A stretch of 64,000 nucleotides of DNA from Piromyces finnis finn. Lineage: Eukaryota; Fungi; Neocallimastigomycota. The position numbers and the translations under genes are program-made. Under the pieces are notes generated by a model, which did no database searches, was not told where the DNA came from, and saw only the letters and a program-made list of their open reading frames with translations. The stretch's first letter is position 1, and every line of letters starts with the position of its first letter. Location: the NCBI GenBank assembly GCA_002104945.1, contig MCFH01000037.1, positions 124,001-188,000 of the forward strand, read 5' to 3'. Shown here piece after piece: positions 2,927-44,703 of this stretch.

Positions 2927-5900
2927 ATGCTATTTTATCAACTAAAAGTGTTAATCTGGAGAAACTTACTATTGAAAAAGAGAAGACTCTTTTCAACATT
3001 ACTTGAAATTATTATTCCAATAATAATTTCTCTTGTAATTGGTACAGTGTATATTAAAATAAAAATTAGTTACAATGTTAAAAATATTAATATTAATAAG
3101 TTTATTAATAATATACTTTAATTTTTTTTTTGGTTATTATTCTAAAACTGATTATAAAGATACATACTTTGAAAAGATAGAAAATTTTAAATTAGAAAAC
3201 TTGGAAACTTATTCTGATGGTAGTTTGTTATATAAAGTAGAATTTGGTTTTATATTCCCTCCAGAATTTGATAATCAAAAGCGACAAATATTTTTAAATA
3301 ATTTTAAATCAAATAAATTTTTTGATAAATTTAATTATCTTGAAAATAATCAAAACTTCACACTTGATAACGAAAAGGTAAACAATGTTCATGAATATAA
3401 GATAAAAATCCTCGAAAATGAAGAAGAATCCGAAAAAGAATTAAAAAAAAGTGAAAAAGAATATTTTATTTACTATTCTGTTATTTTTACTTCATTAATA
3501 AAGTATACAATTGGTGTATATTACATGGAAGAATTATATGAAAAAATTAAAAATGTAGAATTTAACTATATTATGGATAATGAGTATTTTGATGAATTTG
3601 AATATGTTAGTAAATATCAAACAATCATAAATAAATCTATAATAAAAATGTTATCTCCTAATAGTCAAGATTTCAGTATCAGTTATACATTATTAGATAG
3701 AAATTCCTATACTGAAAAAACAAAAGAAAATACAATTCAATCTTTCGTACCACTTTTTATGCTTTTCTATTTTATTCCATGTATATGCAATTTACTCGTT
3801 TTATTAGTTATAGAAAAAGAAACCAAAATTAAAGAATCATTAGTTATTATTGGTTTGAAAAAATCGTCTTTCTGGGTTTCATGGGCTATAACATATGGAA
3901 TTATTATTTTGTTTACCTCTATAATTGTAACAGCAGTAATGATATTTTCTGAATTATTTGTTTATATTCATTGGAGTGTATTAATCATTTCAATCGTAAT
4001 TTTTGGTTTATCATGTTGCTCAATTTCTTTCATTCTTTCAACTTTAATTAACAAATCAAGAACAGCGAATACCATTGGTGCTATGGTTATTGCTTTATTC
4101 TTTGCAATGTTCTTTATAGATATGTTTATGAAAAAATATTTAACATTATATAATGTTTTACAGTATATTATTTCACCAATATCATTTCTTTCGTTATTTG
4201 ATTATCTTATTAAATATGACGAACAGAGAATAAACGTTAATCTTTTTAACATATTCAATAAATTAGGCTTAAAAAACAGTTTCTTAGGATTAATCTTTAC
4301 ATTTGTTTTCTATTTAATCATTGCTATTTATTTGGATAATGTAATACCTCAAGGTAATAATTTCTACAAAAAGTGGAACTTTTTCATTACTGATATTTTC
4401 AAAAACAAAAAACATAAATTATTAGATCCATGCCATAAAAATACTAACAATCAATATATTCAAGAAGATCCAAAGGATTTAAAAAAAGCTGTCGAAATTA
4501 GAAATATATGTAAAACATTTAAAATTAAAGGGGAAAGAGTAGAAATTTTAAAAAACATTGATTTTAACGCATTTTATAATGAAATATTTGCAATTTTAGG
4601 GCACAATGGTGCAGGAAAGACTACTTTAATGAGTATTATGACAGGTATTCTCTCATCCACTAAAGGAGAGGTTTATTACGATGGTATTCCTATTACCGGC
4701 AATGAAACAGAAATATGTAAAAAATTGGTTATTGTCCTCAATTTGATACCTTTAATAACAACTTAACTGTTGGTGAACATATTAAACTTTTTAGTGGTAT
4801 TAAAGGAATTAATGTTGATATTGATTCTATTCTTCAAGATATTGATTTATCAAATAAAAAGAATAATTACCCAAAAGAACTTAGTGGAGGACAAAGAAGA
4901 AAACTTTGTATTACATTAGCTCTTTTAGGATCTCCCAAATATGTATTCTTAGATGAACCTACTACAGGACTTGATCCATATTCTCGTAAAAATATTTGGG
5001 AATTATTATCAAGAAAAAAAGAAGATTGTGTCATCTTTGTTACTACTCATTATATGGATGAAGCTGATCTTTTAGCAGATAGAAAAATGATTATTTCTAA
5101 CGGTAATATTTCATGCCTAGGTACTAGTCTTTTCTTGAAACAGAAATTTAATATGAATTACTCACTTGATATTCATTGTGAGAATACAAAAGACTTTTCT
5201 ATTTCTGATAAAATTATGGATGAATTTTGTCCAGGAACAACTAATACAAGAACTATCAGCAATACTAATATGCAAAGCATAGATGATAACATTAGCAAAT
5301 CTGGAAAAGAAAATGGAGATTACATCATTTCATATTCTTTACCAATGAAATATGTTAAAAACTTTAAGCATATTTTTGAAAATATAAATAAAATAATAAA
5401 AGACCATCATAATTCAATTAAAAAATTTTCATTAACAGCTCCTACACTTGAAGAACTTTTTATTAAATTGGAACATAATGACGAAAATAGTCTTCAATAT
5501 CAAAAAGCAAAAAAATACAGTCAGTATTGATCTAAATTCAGATGATATTAAATTAATAGAAAAGCTTGATCCAATATTTAGCAAAAAATTAGTTAACAAG
5601 TCAACATCTTTCCGACAAATAATGGCTATTGTAAAACTTCGTTTAAAAATATTCTTAAGAAATAAATCGTTTGCCTTTATTTATACTTTATTACCGGTTG
5701 CTCTTTCTATTATTTGTATTTATTTAGTTAATTCATTATATTTACGTTTGCAATCGAATGAGCCTACAATTTTCCAATCATTAAACATTTCTAATTCGCT
5801 ATATGAAAACGAGAAATGGTTTAAGGAAGCTAATATAACCAGTCCAGCATTAAATTACATTAATAAAATAGAGTCAGCTAATAAAATTAGTATTGATACT

Positions 5901-7449
5901 GTTAGTTACGCGAATGATATATCGATTTCTAATGGAAAAGATATTTCCAAATTAAATTATATTGGCGGATTTTATGGTTATTCAGAAAATCAAAATCTTC
6001 ATTTTATTATATATAAAAATATCACTGATACTTTTGCCACATCAATAGGCATTGATATTTTAAGTAATGCTATTCTAGAACAAAATAATAATAAAGATCG
6101 TTTTTCAATTAGCATACACCCATTAAATTTATATTATGATAATTATAATGAAAATGATAAGGATAATCTTTTCAATATTGCACCCGAGATGAGTAAAAGA
6201 GAAATGGAACCTATATTGATTACTGGTTTGTCTCTTTGTATATCTCTTTGTATTTCGATCTTTGGACCGTATGCTGTTAAAGAAAGAGAAGAAGGAATCA
6301 CTCATCAACTTTTTTTAAATGGCACTAAACGTATTAACTACTGGCTAGGTATTCTTATCAGTGATAGTATTTGTATTTTTGTTCCGATTTTGATAATTAC
6401 ATTTGCAGGATATATAAATAATATTAGTATCTTCCATCCAAATATTATAATATTTACATTAGTAATGTCTGTTATGTGGATTGTTGGTAGTTTACTAAAT
6501 CAATATGTTATATCCTATTTCTTTAATAGATATGAAAAAATTTCTACTATTTTTGTTATCATTAATCCTATTCTTAGTCTTTTTGTAGGTACAATCATGA
6601 TCACCTTGGCAGCTAGATCCCATTTAGTTTTTATGGATGACATTGACCAAGTTACTGATGGAAGGGAACTAAAAAAGATAAGAAAAGATAAAATGATGCT
6701 TTATGGAATGTATGCTTTCTTATTTCTTTTTGTCCCTGGCTTTATTATTCTCTATTATGGAAAAATAGATACTTTCCAACTCCATAAAATTATCGAATTT
6801 TCCAAAGAAGAACTTGATGCATTTTTACTTTCTGATGAGGCTAAATCTATTAATTCCAATGATAAGCTCACCAATACTGAAAAATCAAAACTTCTTAAAC
6901 AGAAATTCTTTGATAAAAGAATTCCTACTCTTAAAGATTTATTTAGTTGTAAAGATAGATTTATTATATTAGTTTTATTTGCAATTGCAAGTATTATTAT
7001 ATACGGAATACTTTTAGTAATTATAGAAAAGATAAAGAAAAAGCAATTACATAAACATATTGAATACTCACAAGATGAAATAAGTAAAAAGGAAGAATTT
7101 ATGAAGAATGAACCGATTGATGTTAGAAATGAATTCAAAAGAGTTCGTCAATCTTTAAATGATAGAAATGCTAATATTTCATTAAATGTATTTCAACTAA
7201 ATAAAGATTTCATAATAAAACATAAAGATATTAAAAAGAAAAGAAAAGATGAAAGTATAAATAAGATCGATTCTGGAGATGGAATAGAAGACAAAGCAAT
7301 TAAAAATAAAAAAAATTTAAAAATGAAAAATAAAAGGGCTTTTGAAAAAATGGATAATCGTATAACTTATGATGAAAAGAAAAAAAAGTATATTAATCGT
7401 ATTGTAGATGATGTTACATTTGGTGTAAATATAAAAGAGTGTCTTGGTC

Positions 7450-7480
<31 letters not shown>

Positions 7481-8270
7481 CTCTATTTCTATGATTACTG
7501 GTTTATTAGCTCACACTCATGGAGTTATTAAATATGGTGAAAAAGATTTCAATAAAACGGATATTGCTGATTTATCACTAGGATATTGTTCTCAGCATGA
7601 TTCTCTTTGGAAATTATTAACAGTAAAAGAAACGGTTAATTTCTACCTCAACATTTGTGGTTATTCTAGAAAAGACATTCCTCGTTACACTAAAGCATTA
7701 ATTGAATCTTGTGGTATTGAAAATCATGCCAATAAAAAAGTCTGTGAAATTAGTGGAGGTACCAAACGTAAACTTTCCTTAATCATTGCTATTTGTTCCT
7801 CACCAGATTATCTTATTTTAGATGAACCAAGTGCAGGTATGGATCCATTTACACGTCGTTATATGTGGAATTTAATTTCTAAATTAAAAAATGGTCGTGA
7901 AACTGTTACGATTTTAACTACTCACTCTACAGAAGAAGCAGAAGCTCTTTGTGACCGTATTGCAATTTTAATTAAAGGACGTTTAGTTTGTATTGATACG
8001 CCAAGAAGTATTAGAATGAATTATAATAATACCTATACCTTGGAAGTATTTACCTCTGATCCGGAAAGATTTGAAGAAAGTTTTGTAAAAGAGAAAAATT
8101 TATTTGGGTTAGATGAAAATGAAAATTATGAAGTAGAATCATCCATTAATTATCAAAAATATTCTGTTAAAATAAAAATAGAGAATATTGCTAGAGTATT
8201 TTCTTTAATGGAAGATGCTAAAGAACAAAAATGTGTTAATCAATATAACTTTGGTCAATACTCTCCATAA
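2927..8270 (+). pseudogene. ABC transporter subfamily A (full size, TMD-NBD-TMD-NBD), disrupted as given: frameshifts at 4719-4724 and 5509-5515, and C-terminus cut by a LINE insertion
   Basis: N-terminal QLKVLIWRNLLLKKR...LLEIIIP; EKETKIKESL..IGL; Walker A GHNGAGKT and GPNGAGKT; signatures LSGGQRRKL (read in the shifted frame at ~4880) and ISGGTKRKL; FLDEPTTGLDP/ILDEPSAGMDP; TTHYMDEAD/TTHSTEEAE. Probable short intron 3049-3100. The frameshifts may be sequencing errors. Confidence 0.9.
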
Positions 8271-9280
8271 ATTTGTTGATCCAGTTTGTCCTAACTACTG
8301 TCCATGTTGCAAGTGTGGTGTTCAAAGTATTAAACATTGGTTATTAGATTGTCCAACATTTAGAGATATCCGTATTAAACATTATGATTCTATAGTCCAG
8401 CTACTATATTTTTCAGTCAACGTAATTCCAATAGTCCTATCAATAATAATGAAAATGTTAATATCAGTAGAGATAGCAATAACATTAATAGTAATAGTAA
8501 CAATAGTAATAGTAACAATAGTAATAGTAACAATAGTAATAGTAACAATAGTAATAATAGAAATAGTAATAATAACAATAGTAGTTATAGAAATAATAAT
8601 ACTAGTAATGATAGCAATAGTGAAGATAATAATTCTAATTTAGATAGTAATTTAGTTAATAATAGTAATAGTTCTAATAATCCGGTGAATATTAATGTGT
8701 ACGATTATTCTAGTGTGTGCAGTAAAATATTTAAATTCCTTCTTGGGGGAAGAAGTTTTAACAATATTAATTACAATTCAAGGGAATGGAAAGAACTTTG
8801 TAAGCGTCAGATTCAATCTGGTACTAACGAAGGAACACCATTCTTGACGGTAACCGCGGAACTTCTAACCAAAATCATGCCTTTTGCTATTGGCCAGCAA
8901 TGGTCAATGTTCAAAAGGTTTGAAGCAACATCCAAGAGCGTCAATGCTGAAGAAACAGTAAGACAGGCCAGGAGGGCCAGCGCAACCAATGGAGATCATA
9001 ATTTTGTTCCATGACAAAATTTTGATCTTTGGCTCGGTGTCCCATTGGAAGTCAAATACAATTATTATACTTTAGTATGATAGTGGCTTTCTTACTTTAA
9101 TTAAAATTACTAGAATACATTATACCCAATTTTTATTCATTTGTGTTTATTTAAACATATTTTTTTTATTTTTATTTTTGTTTTTTAATTTTTTATTACA
9201 TGTATTATAATTTTAATTAAATTAATAATAAAGTTTAAAATATTTGATGCCGTTAAAAAAAAAAAAAAAAAAAAAAAAAA
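8268..9280 (+). mobile_element. 5'-truncated LINE (non-LTR retrotransposon) copy, ~1.0 kb, with A26 tail
   Basis: Highly similar to the reverse complement of 23500-24422: encodes the CPNYCPCCKCGVQSIKHWLLDC zinc knuckle and the same 3' UTR ending TATTTGATGCCGTT(A)26. It has a 1-nt deletion near 8410. No TSD found. Confidence 0.95.
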
Positions 9281-22778: not shown

Positions 22779-23330
22779 GTAAGAAAGCCACTATTATACT
22801 AAAGATAAAAATTTTGTCATGTATCCTACTGTTTCTTCAGCACTGACGCTTTTGGTTGTTGCTTCAAACCTTTTGAACATTGACCATTGCTGACCAATAA
22901 CAAAAAGCATAATTTTGGTTAGGGGTTCCGCTGTTACCATTAAGAATAGTGTTCTTTCGTAAGTGCCCAATTGAATCTGACACTTGTAAAGTTCTTTCCA
23001 TTCCCTTGAACTGTAATTGATATTGTTAAAACTTCTTCCCCCAAGAAGGAATTTAAATATCTGCACACACTATAATAATCATACACATTAATATTCACCG
23101 GATTATTAGAACTATTATTATTATTAACTAAATTACTATCTAAATTAGAATTAGTATCCTCACTATTGCTATCATTACTAATATTGTTATTTCTACTACT
23201 ACTATTGTTATTATTACTATTGTTACTATTACTATTACTATTGTAATAGTAACAATAACCAGTAGAGGCCATAGGCAAATTCTTGGTACTCATAACACAA
23301 TTTAATAAAATTTTTAGTTTCAATAAATAT
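22779..23330 (-). mobile_element. Degenerate, internally deleted relic of the same LINE family
   Basis: Matches 23651-24545 in blocks (AAGTAAGAAAGCCACTAT..., CTACTGTTTCTTCAGC..., KFLLGGRSFNNINY, Asn-rich tract, AATAACCAGTAGAGGCCATAGGC) with several deletions and substitutions. Confidence 0.9.
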
Positions 23331-23361
23331 TTATTTTTTATTTTCTTTTTTTCTTTAAGCT

Positions 23362-23435
23362 TTTGGTACAATGTTTTTTTTTTTTTTTTTTTTTTTTTTT
23401 AATGGCATCAAATATTTTTAAATTTGGTACAATGT
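23362..23435 (-). mobile_element. Micro retro-insertion: 22 nt of LINE 3' end plus A27, flanked by the 13-bp TSD TTTGGTACAATGT
   Basis: TSD at 23362-23374 and 23423-23435. Insert T-run + AATGGCATCAAATATTTTTAAA matches the LINE terminus AACGGCATCAAATATTTTAAA (23500-23520). Confidence 0.85.
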
Positions 23436-23475
23436 ATACTTTAACTTTAATTTTTTAAGTTTAAAGTTTTTTGAT

Positions 23476-26400
23476 TTTTTTTTTTTTTTTTTTTTTTTTA
23501 ACGGCATCAAATATTTTAAACTTTATTATTAATTTAATTAAAATTATAATACATTTAACATAAAAAATTAAAAATAAAAATAAAAAAAATATGTTTAAAT
23601 AAACACAAATGAATAAAAATTGGGTATAATGTATTCTAGTAATTTTAATTAAAGTAAGAAAGCTACTATCATACTAAAGTATAATAATTGTATTTGACTT
23701 CCAATGGGACACCGAGCCAAAGATCAAAATTTTGTCATGGAACAAAATTATGATCTCCATTGGTTGCGCTGGCCCTCCTGGCCTGTCTTACTGTTTCTTC
23801 AGCATTGACGCTCTTGGATGTTGCTTCAAACCTTTTGAACATTGACCATTGCTGGCCAATAGCAAAAGACATGATTTTGATTAGAAGTTCCGCGGTTACC
23901 GTCAAGAATGGTGTTCCTTCATTAGTACCAGATTGAATCTGACGCATACAAAGTTCTTTCCATTCCCTTGAATTGTAATTAATATTGTTAAAACTTCTTC
24001 CCCCAAGAAGGAATTTAAATATTTTACTGCACACACTATAATAATCATACACATTAATATTCACCGGATTATTAGAACTATTACTATCATTAACTAAATT
24101 ACTATCTAAATTAGAATTATTATCTTCACTATTGTTATCATTACTAATATTATTATTTCTATTACTACTATTGTTATTATTACTATTGTTACTATTACTA
24201 TTAATGTTATTGCTATCTCTACTGATATTAACATTTTCATTATTATTGATAGGACTATTGGAATTACGTTGACTGAAAAAATTTAATAGATGGACTATGG
24301 AATCATAATGTTTAATATGGATATCTCTAAATGTTGGACAATCTAATAACCAATGTTTAATACTTTGAACACCACACTTGCAACATGGACAGTAGTTAGG
24401 ACAAACTGGATCAACAAATTTAGCAGCTTTGGCAACTCTAGCATCCAACTTGTATCCGCTTCTTGCCTTCAATAACCAGTAGAAGCCATAGGCAAACTCT
24501 GGGTACTCATAACATAATTTAATAAAATCTTTAGTTTCAATAAATTTATTATCATCATAATATTGCGCTTTGATTGAATTCCTTTTGAGATCTTTCCAAT
24601 AAAAGTTTTTAATTGCTTTAATATCTCCATGCTTCTTTAGTTTTTTATCAAGTGTCCTACTTGATTTGCACCACGTGTATTTTCTAAATTTAGGAATGTA
24701 ATTGACAAGGTGTGAGATAATACAATTTGAGTTTTTCCATTTGTTAAAACATCTAACCTGAGCTAACGCACATTTGGCTGACAATGGAGGAATATTCAAA
24801 TCTTTTGAGATAGAGTATAAAGATATAAACGATACAGCTTTATGAACTCCGGCAACCCATCGTATTCCTTTGTTAACATGCTTCTGATCAATCCTAGACC
24901 TAGCTTTGTTGGATCCAAGTAATGGTGCAAAGTATGAAACTCTGCTGATTACTTGTGAGTTAAGTACTAGTTTTTTGAAAGGAATAGGAATATTAGGATT
25001 TCTTAAGAATTTACTGACTGAGAAAAGTCCTTTCAAAACCCTGTTATTAAGAGCTTTAATTACTGGTTTAAGGGACAAATTCTTATCAAATGGAACACCA
25101 AGATAAGTATAGCAATCAGTAGTTGGAATGGGTTTTCCTGCTAAGTAAAATGTTGGATCTCTCTTGTTCTGATTTTCTATTGATTCAGGACGAATCACCA
25201 TCGTTGAACATTTCTGGATACCAAATTCCATTTCATTATACAATGCCCATTCATTAACTCTTCTAAGCATCTTTTTTAAGCATCCTCTCTTGTTGGAGCA
25301 CAAATAACTATATCATCTGCAAAAAGTCCACCACAGCATCGAGTGTCACCTAAACTGACTCCGAGATCTTCGCATTCTTTAAAAATATCATTAATAAAGA
25401 GATTAAAGAGAATAGGAGAAAGTGGGCAACCTTGACGGACTCCTTTCTTCACATCAAAAGATTTCGAAAATTGACCATCTAATTTGACATTAGCCTTAGA
25501 TGTTAAATATAAATTTTTGATAAATTGTAAACTCTTACCTCGGATTCCTAAACAATCTAATTTATGGAGAATATTACCGATTGGGACTGAATTATATGCT
25601 TTCCTGAGATCTAAAAAGGCCAAATATGTCTCTTTATTATCTAATTGACGTCTACGGCATATTTCTTGGATTGAAATGAAAAGACTAATACTTTCTTCCT
25701 TTTTTCGAAAACCAAATTGTTCAGGTCTAATGAAATTATTCTTTAGACCATATTCTGAGATTCTAGTGGCGACAATTTTGGAAATCAACTTAATACCATT
25801 ATTGATTAGTGATATACCTCGATAGTTATCACAATTTGTCAAATCTCCCTTCTTAGGAATAGAAACAATACTGGATTCATTCCATGAGTTGGGGAAATCT
25901 CCATCCCAAATACGGTTGAATAATTTAAGAATAAAATTTAAACCATGAGCATCATTATCTGAAGTAGTATTACCAGAAGAATTATTATCTGTAGCATTAT
26001 TAGAATCATTACTTGATGGAATTAATGCTTTGTAAAATTCAATTGGAATACCATCCGGACCTGATGCTTTATAATTTGGAGTAGAGAGGATAGCTGACTT
26101 GACTTCATCAATACTAATATCTTGATTGATATCCCATTCATCAAGCATAGGAAGTGAAAAACGTTTATTCGTTGGTTCTTCATACCAATGCTCCAAATCA
26201 AGACTTACACCACTTGGATCTGATGCAAGATTTTCGAAATGATCATGCCACACTTCTAGCTGTTCTTCTGTAGCAACAACTAATTCTCCATTTTTGTTTT
26301 TAATTGGTTGAGCAATAAAGAAAGAATCTTTTCCAATTTTTGCAGTTTTCTTGATCCATTTCCAGGCCTTCTTAGGATTATGACTCTTCATATACTCACA

Positions 26401-26741
26401 TCCTGTTTTAATCCAATGAAGATATTCTTGTTTCCTAAATTCATTACATCTTTTGTGGATGTAATCGATGAGCTTACGGTAGATTTTAATTCTTTTAATA
26501 AATTCATCTATATCATAAATTCTTTCTTTTTTAAATCTCTTATACAACTTCATTTTGATTTTTTGAAGATTAAAAATTTGTTGTGAAATATGAAATGAAG
26601 ACTTTATAACATTATTTGCTGAGGTAATACTGAGCTCGTCTGCAATTGAAAAAGCAGTTGAAGTAAACTCTTTGGAAAGTTCATCTGTAGAAACATTAGG
26701 ATCGTTGAATTTTGCTGAAAGTATTTGGAATTTATTATGAC
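23476..26741 (-). mobile_element. LINE (non-LTR retrotransposon), 3.27 kb, 5'-truncated, poly(A) tail, 14-bp TSD TAAAGTTTTTTGAT (23462-23475 and 26742-26755)
   Basis: RT motifs KASGPDGIP, IVSIPKKGD...NYRGISL, EQFGFR, AFLDLRKAY, KGVRQGCPLSPILFNLFI, FADD; C-terminal CCHC knuckle; T25 run at 23475-23499; the reading frame is open right up to the 5' truncation point. Confidence 0.97.
23735..26741 (-). pseudogene. LINE ORF2 (reverse transcriptase + zinc knuckle), lacking the N-terminal endonuclease region, with one frameshift at ~25285-25290
   Basis: ORFs 25276-26553 and 23735-25303 join if the (AG)n run after FADDIVICAPTR is shortened by 2 nt (PTRGCLKKMLRRVNEW). Confidence 0.9.
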
Positions 26742-27327
26742 TAAAGTTTTTTGATGTAATAAATATAGGTTAGCAATTTACATTATTTGTTACTTTAAAA
26801 AAAAATACATATCTAAATTTTAAATTATTAAAAAAAATAAAAGAGAGAGAAATAGTGCATAAAATAAAATAATAGGTTATTTTTTTTTTTTTTTTCATTA
26901 TTATTTTTTTTCTTAATGAAACTATAATATTGATTTATATATAATAAAATAAAAATTAAAAACACAAAATGTATTCCTTCTTTTTTTTTTTTTAATTATT
27001 TTTTTATTTTTTATTTATTAATAATAATTTTTTATCAATTATATTATTATTTGAATTTGTTTTTAATTATAATTAAATAAATATTGAGCTATTAAAAATT
27101 ATATATATAAATATATATATATATCAAATAAAAAAAAAAATTTTTTTTTTCTCACTTATAATTAATAACTCTTTCTATTATATACAAATTTTTATAACAT
27201 TTTTATCAAAAAAATGATTATAAAAATATTTTAATTTTTTTAAAAAACTATTAAAAAAAAATATATAATCCTGAAAGAAAAATTAATCATAATCGGAATT
27301 TGTTAAATATCTCTCTCCCCACCAAAT

Positions 27328-43691: not shown

Positions 43692-43857
43692 TTTTAATTG
43701 TAAATATGTTGAAATTAGAATTATTGGGTTAACAAGCATTTTTATTAATGACTTCTTAATAAAATTATGGAATGAAATATCAAAAATTGCTAAAAATTTT
43801 TGAAAAACTTTAAAGATTTTCTAAAGTATAATTATTATTGGAATAGAATGAAAATTC

Positions 43858-44415
43858 GTCGTTCCAGTTTTTATCCTGGTTGTTAAGGCGTTTCCTTAGC
43901 ATATATAAGGCTTCTGGTTCGACCCCGCAGATGTCAGTGCCTGTGGATTTTCCCACTGGGTTTGCCATGGGTTGGGTTATGATATTCAGGTAAGTATAAA
44001 TGAACTTTCTAATTTACTACTATGATAATAACACTCGTCTAGCCGGCCTGAGAGGGTCTAGTGTACATGGTACATTCCAAATTAGAACTTAATAAGTGGT
44101 GACTTAGGCTATGCCAAAAACACATAATATTCCTTAATCAATTTAAGTGTAAACATTAGGGGGCGGTTGACACGTGATCAAATTGACTATAAGAGGCTTA
44201 GCATTGTAGTTGTGAAATATCGTACAACGACATGCATCTAATGTACATGGATTAAGTGAGCGTCGAAGCTGAAGAAACAGTATGACAGACCAGGAGGGTC
44301 ACAACCACCTAGCAATAGGAATGAGCCAACGTTTCTCTAAGAACCACCATTGGAGCTAACTCTGATCGATGGGAGAAATGCACTCGGAAGTTAAAAAAAA
44401 AAAAAAAAAAAAAAA
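43858..44415 (+). mobile_element. tRNA-derived SINE (~560 bp) with A23 tail, LINE-related 3' segment and 13-bp TSD AGAATGAAAATTC (43845-43857, 44415-44427)
   Basis: GC-richer island in AT-rich DNA; B box GGTTCGACCCC (43916-43926); A-box-like TGGTTGTTAAGG (43877-43888); TTAGCAT anticodon-loop-like heptamer (43896-43902); 39/44-nt match to the LINE 3' ORF end; poly(A); TSD. Confidence 0.88.
43877..43926 (+). promoter_or_regulatory. Internal RNA polymerase III type-2 promoter (A-box-like + B box) of the SINE head
   Basis: GGTTCGACCCC fits GGTTCGANNCC; the A box is degenerate; a T5 run at 43868-43872 may attenuate this copy. Confidence 0.7.
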
Positions 44416-44703
44416 GAATGAAAATTCATCGCTAATATCTTATTCTTTGTTGTGCCTTCTTCTTTATTATTTAGACGAGTACTAAAAAAAAAAATATTTA
44501 AAAATTTTAATATACAATATTTTTTTAAAAAAAAAAAATATCACTTTCTACAATAAAATTTTATGTATGACAAAAAAATAAATGGAAATATATTACAATA
44601 TATTGTAATTACATATTAAATAAAATTAATAACACATTAAAAATTAAAAAATGAAAAAAACGTGTTTTAAACGGTCAATTATATATTATTATTAACAATG
44701 ACT

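Follow-up and report, generated by a model that had tools for sequence, protein, structure and literature searches.

A transcribed SINE-type retroposon of the anaerobic gut fungus Piromyces finnis and the two-hairpin block that it shares with an L1-like LINE

What is the GC-rich insert that interrupts an AT-rich region of the Piromyces finnis genome, and by what machinery was it copied there? The question arises from a 64-kb stretch of contig MCFH01000037.1 (assembly GCA_002104945.1, positions 124,001 to 188,000 of the forward strand). This whole stretch is referred to below as the window and is numbered from its first nucleotide. The segment 43858-44392 on the plus strand is a short, non-coding, multi-copy retroposon of the type known as a short interspersed nuclear element (SINE), which is flanked by target-site duplications (TSDs) and ends in a poly(A) tail. 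We hold it highly probable that the insert is a full-length and very recent copy of such a non-autonomous retroposon, copied by an L1-like long interspersed nuclear element (LINE). The most interesting part of the system is a conserved two-hairpin module, common to the SINE and to the end of the second open reading frame (ORF) of the LINE, ORF2.

The SINE unit and its family

The unit comprises 535 nt, starts with GTCGTTCC and ends with GGAAGTT. It is bracketed by an exact 13-bp repeat, AGAATGAAAATTC, found at 43845-43857 upstream and at 44415-44427 downstream, both on the plus strand. A run of 22 adenines (44393-44414) separates the unit from the downstream repeat; the run becomes A23 if position 44415 is counted, as the first A of the duplication cannot be told from the tail. 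The unit and its tail (43858-44414) have a GC content of 40%, compared to 19% for the whole window. Repeated 13-mers are not rare in a sequence this rich in AT, and 13 moderately complex pairs were counted at spacings of 400-800 bp. A chance duplication is excluded all the same, because the repeats abut the GC island and the A tail exactly and because a second copy, described below, is also flanked by a TSD. The longest ORFs inside the unit encode 30-37 aa. By its translation, a 52-aa ORF that touches the unit extends into the flank, and a search for proteins called on this spurious frame, through which further copies might have been collected, gave no candidates.

Along the plus strand, the unit begins with a head module (43858-43946). 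This module contains a run of five thymines, T5 (43868-43872, nt 11-15 of the unit and within the transcript), a weak A-box-like site, TATCCTGGTTG (43872-43882, matching six of the nine specified positions of TRGCNNAGTGG), and a B box, GGTTCGACCCC (43916-43926, nt 59-69), which is a perfect match to GGTTCGANNCC. A U1-complementary motif that resembles a 5′ splice site, TGATATTCAG/GTAAGT, follows at 43980-43995. The LINE-related two-hairpin block occupies 44258-44307 (nt 401-450), and the 3′-terminal 85 nt (44308-44392), which include the closing GGAAGTT, show no similarity to the LINE. A preliminary description of the locus, made from the sequence alone, had listed the 13-bp TSD, the A23 tail, the lack of an ORF and the B box, and each of these is present. 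The head string that it quoted is found in the sequence as well.

Only one copy of the SINE lies in the window. A second full-length copy was located elsewhere in the same P. finnis assembly (L009:10852-11385, GCA_002104945.1); it carries an A40 tail and is identical to the window copy at 533 of 534 positions. The sole difference is at nt 47 of the unit (43904), where the window has a private T and the family has C. This second copy sits inside a LINE, the sequence of which resumes beyond a 12-bp duplication, TTTAACAATATC. Between its upstream TSD and nt 1 of the SINE there are 20 extra nucleotides (AGGGGCGTAAAAGAAAGAAG, L009:10832-10851), which have no match in any other locus compared. They could represent 5′ transduction from the source locus, or template switching.

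The extent of the family was assessed with Logan contigs aligned to the locus, drawn from a DNA run (X4) and an RNA run (X3) of the source organism and from a further RNA run (X1). The flank contigs of the DNA run show zero differences from the window, which identifies them as the same genome. Summed word depth, which is not to be equated with true copy number or, for RNA, with expression level, was 150-430 in the flanks and 1.1-6.1×10^5 in the SINE, a difference of about 1000-fold. At both ends of the SINE the depth changes in a step, in the bin with position 43858 and in the one where the A tail begins, and DNA contigs with unrelated AT-rich flanks stop exactly at 43858. The 1427 contigs of this run spread over a broad range of divergence, with 431 at 99% identity or more, 382 at 95-99%, 388 at 90-95% and 226 below 90%. 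The family numbers about 10^3 copies in order of magnitude and includes young as well as older members. With the L009 copy and this depth in hand, the insert is not the single copy without TSD-flanked relatives that the preliminary description had allowed for.

Two sets of contigs depart from the composition of the unit. In the first, which includes both DNA and RNA contigs, nt 1-69 of the SINE are shared and the sequence diverges after 43926, continuing as CGCCATTGACAGTTC; this suggests that the same head is carried by one or more further repeat families. In the second, four DNA contigs leave a LINE-like version of the block at 44298 into CCAGCACAACCAATGGA and then A12, which places poly(A) almost directly after the block. 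Both sets would fit a modular family of heads and tails.

The SINE is abundant among the RNA contigs. The RNA run of the source organism gave summed depths of 3×10^4 to 2.2×10^5 over the SINE and 0 over the flanks, and contigs identical to the window copy have a depth of about 23,500. Contamination by DNA is excluded as the source of this signal, since the flanks would then be seen as well. The RNA contigs carry no strand, 5′-end chemistry or polymerase information. Between 55% and 86% of the sampled words of the SINE are present in RNA runs labelled as three other organisms, two of which contain near-identical SINE contigs at a low depth of about 5; these would come from close relatives or from carry-over.

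The high-depth RNA contigs exactly equal the family consensus. This is what one would see if the copies were retropseudogenes, dead on arrival, of a single abundant non-coding RNA gene of the cell, itself the source of the RNA. The 431 DNA contigs with at least 99% identity are as expected of a single master source, and the head of the unit has a significantly stable fold (given below), both of which speak for such an origin. We consider it improbable. No Rfam family matches the SINE at E≤10, and the whole SINE RNA is no more stable than its shuffles (z -0.06). The divergence spectrum and the variant subfamilies seen in the loose ends of contigs indicate a succession of source genes, and the LINE module within the unit would be without reason in a housekeeping RNA. 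Moreover, a SINE that spreads from a master gene remains a SINE.

The probable partner LINE and the shared block

A 5′-truncated LINE copy of 3.3 kb lies on the minus strand of the window (23478-26742). It contains a reverse transcriptase (RT) domain (RVT_1), the end of ORF2, an AT-rich 3′ untranslated region (UTR) of 240 nt and poly(A), and it is flanked by a 13-bp TSD, ATCAAAAAACTTT (26743-26755 and 23463-23475). A second and shorter 5′-truncated copy of 1 kb is found on the plus strand (8268-9277, ORF2 stop at about 9012-9014). The LINE at L009 is near full length, its 5′ UTR running from about 5700 and preceding one long reading frame in two pieces, in which the domains Exo_endo_phos and RVT_1 are recognized. 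Among solved structures, human L1 ORF2p is the nearest match of the RT (E 1e-22). When the ORF2 C-terminus of the window LINE was used in a protein search, its relatives proved to be proteins of anaerobic gut fungi, and the nearest one with a name is from Piromyces finnis. The partner is an L1-like LINE, as seen in its apurinic/apyrimidinic endonuclease (APE) and RT, its poly(A), its variable 5′ truncation and its 13-bp TSDs. The preliminary description had matched the TSD length of the SINE to that of the LINE, and the match holds, with 13 bp for the SINE (12 for the L009 copy) and 13 bp for the LINE. These 12-13-bp duplications and the poly(A) end of the SINE fit an L1-like machinery. The equal TSD length, the poly(A) ends and a shared block of 50 nt are indirect indications that the SINE may be mobilized in trans by the resident LINE.

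The block is found at 8936-8988 (plus strand) and at 23813-23761 (minus strand) in the two LINE copies of the window. The SINE and LINE versions agree at 39 of 44 positions, which reproduces the count given initially, or at 45 of 53 with one 3-nt gap (BLAST E 6e-11). The block ends 85 nt upstream of the A tail in the SINE and about 265 nt upstream of it in the LINE, where it falls within the final ~80 nt of the coding part of ORF2; the stop codon is 24 nt beyond the block and is followed by the 3′ UTR. Sequence similarity is confined to this segment of the tail region. The last 84-85 nt of the SINE (nt 451-534 in the comparison) scored 9 against the LINE 3′ UTR, for a shuffle mean of 8.5, and the 400 nt before the block gave no score above shuffles when compared with the LINE. 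The 3′ termini of the two elements are not homologous, and the shared 3′-terminal tail that characterizes a stringent pair is absent. The SINE had been credited with a LINE-derived tail. A significant block of LINE sequence is indeed shared, but the term is too strong, since the block is internal in both elements and the terminal 85 nt of the SINE have no LINE similarity. A SINE-LINE partnership, also proposed at the outset, is the best reading of the locus, because the SINE shares this significant block of LINE sequence.

The same block is present in LINEs of Neocallimastix lanati (L015), of two metagenome contigs (L012 and L014) and of Anaeromyces robustus (L010, in three variants), in all of which the identity of the ORF2 C-terminus is only about 45-60%. 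Conservation across these lineages, which come from several genera of gut fungi, begins sharply at GAGCGTC, the same point at which the similarity to the SINE begins. Mean pairwise nucleotide identity among the LINE lineages is 0.77-0.82 in the block, compared to 0.35-0.55 in the 360 nt upstream of it. No other piece of the 3′ end of ORF2 is as well conserved in its nucleotides. Two hairpins were found in the block by RNAalifold. Hairpin 1 (GUC...GAC enclosing GCUG...CAGU) is invariant in 8 of 8 sequences, and is for that reason neutral on pairing. In hairpin 2 (GNCC-AGNAG-GGNC), two pairs have changed on both sides, from G-C to A-U in the SINE and from C-G to A-U or U-A in the variants of A. 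robustus. The covariation score lies above all 500 shuffles and all slid controls. Five substitutions distinguish SINE from LINE in the first 44 nt; three are in loops and the remaining two make up one compensatory pair. Both hairpins recur in the folds of minimum free energy, in that of the SINE tail as well as in that of the LINE end, and the SINE, although non-coding, keeps the predicted structure of the block. Judged by these alignments and folds, the two-hairpin module looks functional.

In A. robustus, one of the block variants (L010:9793-10060) agrees at several positions with the block of the SINE (GTCGAAGC, GGTCAC). It is closely preceded by a retroposed scrap of about 55 bp that ends in A25 and is flanked by a 14-bp TSD, TTAATTGAACAACT. 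The variants and the scrap point to the same kind of machinery, and to several lineages of the block, in that fungus.

A second and shorter similarity connects the SINE to the LINE. The U1-complementary 9-mer CAGGTAAGT, at nt 130-138 of the SINE, occurs once in the 64-kb window, in the SINE alone. It lies within a 16-mer, TGATATTCAGGTAAGT, that is found exactly in the 5′ UTR of the LINE (L009:6007-6022), and 0 of 500 local shuffles reach a match of 16 nt. The two pieces shared with the LINE, one of its 5′ UTR (the 16-mer) and one of the end of ORF2 (the block), stand in the SINE in collinear order, as they would if the SINE were an internally deleted LINE derivative, made of a 5′ UTR piece and a 3′ piece, and not an independent SINE. 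Such a derivation is very improbable in our estimation, as no similarity to the sole full-length LINE copy compared (L009) could be detected over about 470 of the 535 nt, and neither the 3′-terminal 85 nt nor the first 120 nt are related to the LINE termini. A 5′-truncated LINE was also considered as the identity of the insert and was ruled out, since the insert lacks an ORF and shows similarity only within the block.

We propose, tentatively, that the SINE might parasitize the LINE by way of the internal two-hairpin RNA module, and not by a 3′-terminal tail. Should this be the case, the module, which in the LINE coincides in part with the final codons of ORF2, could be where the ORF2 protein makes contact with its own RNA (cis-preference), and the SINE would mimic this site. 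The U1-type 5′ splice-site motif would then be a second module, borrowed from the 5′ UTR of the LINE.

Smaller LINE fragments are also scattered in the window. Downstream of the long copy, a tiny 5′-truncated 3′ end, about 24 nt long without its poly(A), lies on the minus strand at 23362-23435, with a 13-bp TSD, ACATTGTACCAAA (23423-23435 and 23362-23374). In another fragment (22824-23335), hairpin 2 of the block (22851-22822) is cut through by a deletion. The shorter of the two truncated copies adjoins an ABC-transporter ORF of 940 aa (5448-8270, with the domains ABC2_membrane_3 and ABC_tran), the TAA stop of which is formed by the first three bases of the LINE at 8268-9277. This LINE may have been inserted into the transporter gene, truncating its 3′ end.

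The head of the unit and the polymerase question

The head had been derived from tRNA-Ala in the preliminary description, a derivation for which we found no support in the Rfam tRNA model, in ARAGORN or in folding. ARAGORN detected no tRNA gene in the 64-kb window or in any of the loci L009-L016, and none on the SINE head at thresholds of 80% and above. At a threshold of 70%, it called a cloverleaf in the head as Leu(TAG), not Ala, and the control for this hit gave matches in 22% of shuffled heads and in 53% of those in which the B box was left intact. The tRNA model RF00005, applied to 901 nt and to the 111-nt head, had no match at E≤10 in either. Two weak matches to long non-coding RNA (lncRNA) regions, at 9 bits, were the only Rfam results on the 111-nt head, and at the gathering score no family, be it tRNA, 5S or snRNA, was found in 144 kb of gut-fungus DNA (the window and seven loci, L011 being left out). 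The best fold of the head is a non-cloverleaf structure of -29.4 kcal/mol (z -3.84). In this fold the B-box region is paired with the 5′ end, and the pairing of GUUAAGG with CCUUAGC places TTAGCAT, the supposed anticodon loop, in one strand of an 8-bp stem.

Some features of the head are in keeping with tRNA ancestry. TTAGCAT (nt 39-45) and the B box are both offset by 7 relative to tRNA numbering, and their spacing is compatible with that of a tRNA. The head would also be a fair match to yeast tRNA-Ala(AGC). We regard the descent of the head from a tRNA as an evenly balanced matter, and its assignment to Ala as less probable than the descent itself. A metagenome scan with a 19-nt pattern of head and B box gave eight matches, which we set aside as chance; they lie in contigs of 57-69% GC that have no further similarity and no tRNAs. 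Scans of viral contigs gave no match.

The likeliest polymerase for the SINE RNA, to judge from the sequence of the unit, would be RNA polymerase III (Pol III), acting through the internal B box at nt 59-69. The perfect B box is positioned as in an internal promoter of the tRNA type, the SINE copies have a sharp 5′ end in common, and AATAAA and ATTAAA are both absent from the whole unit. Pol III transcription and the origin from tRNA-Ala are both putative.

Several observations weigh against the reading of the insert as a SINE transcribed by Pol III and mobilized by the LINE. The ancestry in tRNA failed every model-based test, be it ARAGORN, Rfam or the fold. The best A-box site (nt 15-25) has three mismatches and is no evidence alone, since five other sites in the SINE match equally well. 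The T5 run is read through, as it is included in an RNA contig of run X1 that starts at 43867, and such a run would be an oddity inside a Pol III transcript. The 20 nt upstream of nt 1 in the L009 copy are unexpected for a fixed Pol III start, and the SINE RNA contigs could include read-through transcripts. The U1-type motif common to the LINE 5′ UTR hints at RNA polymerase II (Pol II) biology. With regard to the module, the covariation is based on eight sequences only. As the block is coding in the LINE, where it specifies the moderately conserved peptide KSVxA[ED]x[TS]V.Q..R, part of its conservation could also be at the level of the protein.

The perfect U1 site within the 16-mer, the T5 run at nt 11-15 and the 20 extra 5′ nucleotides of the L009 copy, along with the high representation of the SINE in the contigs of the RNA runs and a head that no tRNA model matches, would be at home in a Pol II-transcribed retroposon. 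Such an element would depend on the LINE and would be a chimera of LINE-related and unrelated sequence, its B box being fortuitous or vestigial. We deem this rather unlikely in view of the same three features that point to Pol III, namely a perfect 11-nt B box exactly at the position of a type-2 promoter, a sharp 5′ end common to the copies and a unit free of AATAAA and ATTAAA. Beyond the 16-mer and the 50-nt block, there is also no significant similarity to the LINE. RNA contigs cover the U1-type motif unspliced. Splicing of an intron-like segment, GTAAGT...CTAG (~43990-44041), was considered and rejected; no joint was reported and high-depth RNA contigs span the segment.

On the reading that we prefer, of a SINE copied by an L1-like LINE, the cycle would begin with source copies that give rise to SINE RNA, most likely by Pol III from the B box, and transcription would terminate in a T-rich flank past the encoded A tail. 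The ORF2 protein of the LINE would capture this RNA via its poly(A) tail, probably aided by the two-hairpin module. The protein would then nick a T/A-type target and reverse-transcribe the RNA in place, and a TSD of 12-13 bp would result.

Comparison with known SINE-LINE systems

The SINE of P. finnis is a real new family of an otherwise canonical kind of element. Our literature search brought up no publication about SINEs of the Neocallimastigomycota, Piromyces included. Anaerobic gut fungi are organisms of biotechnological interest, and the SINE would be an active insertional mutagen for which the annotation of their genomes has to account; its insertions would also constitute a set of insertion-polymorphism markers. 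The shared module of 50 nt is small and structured and shows compensatory change, and for these reasons the SINE and LINE make up a compact natural system for the question of what an L1-like reverse transcriptase recognizes besides poly(A).

In the classic design of a SINE, a tRNA head is followed by an unrelated body and a LINE-like tail, as in UnaSINE1 of the eel and its partner UnaL2. The SINE and LINE of P. finnis resemble such stringent pairs in sharing a short sequence that folds into conserved stem-loops. They differ from them in that the block is non-terminal and lies within the coding end of the LINE ORF2, whereas at their 3′ termini, which both finish with poly(A), the two elements are unrelated.

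The poly(A) ends of both elements are instead a likeness to Alu/L1 and other relaxed, poly(A)-dependent pairs. The likeness to Alu/L1 extends to an L1-like partner RT with an APE endonuclease, to TSDs of 12-14 bp, to 5′-truncated LINE copies and to a SINE family that is young, high-copy and transcribed. In contrast to Alu, the head of the P. finnis SINE is not derived from 7SL, the unit is 535 nt long and the host is a fungus. The P. finnis element also bears a discrete, structured, LINE-derived block, and Alu is without one.

The fungal SINEs described in one portion of a review include MgSINE (472 bp, ~100 copies), Foxy (~160 copies), Egr1/EGH24 and AfuSINE2/3 (PMC5063351). The examples in that portion come from ascomycetes, with between tens and a few hundred copies per family. 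Within the same part of the review, several points of likeness to the P. finnis SINE are apparent, as these elements are of the same size class, have heads of the A/B-box type and carry TSDs of up to 14 bp (PMC5063351). Two of the likenesses bear on the features that make the P. finnis SINE unusual: the heads of AfuSINE2 are described there as also failing to fold as cloverleaves, and AfuSINE2-1a as resembling the 3′ region of its LINE (PMC5063351). Compared, by description only, with the ascomycete SINEs of that portion, the element reported here stands apart in its host, a member of the Neocallimastigomycota, and in a copy number that is about ten-fold higher (PMC5063351).

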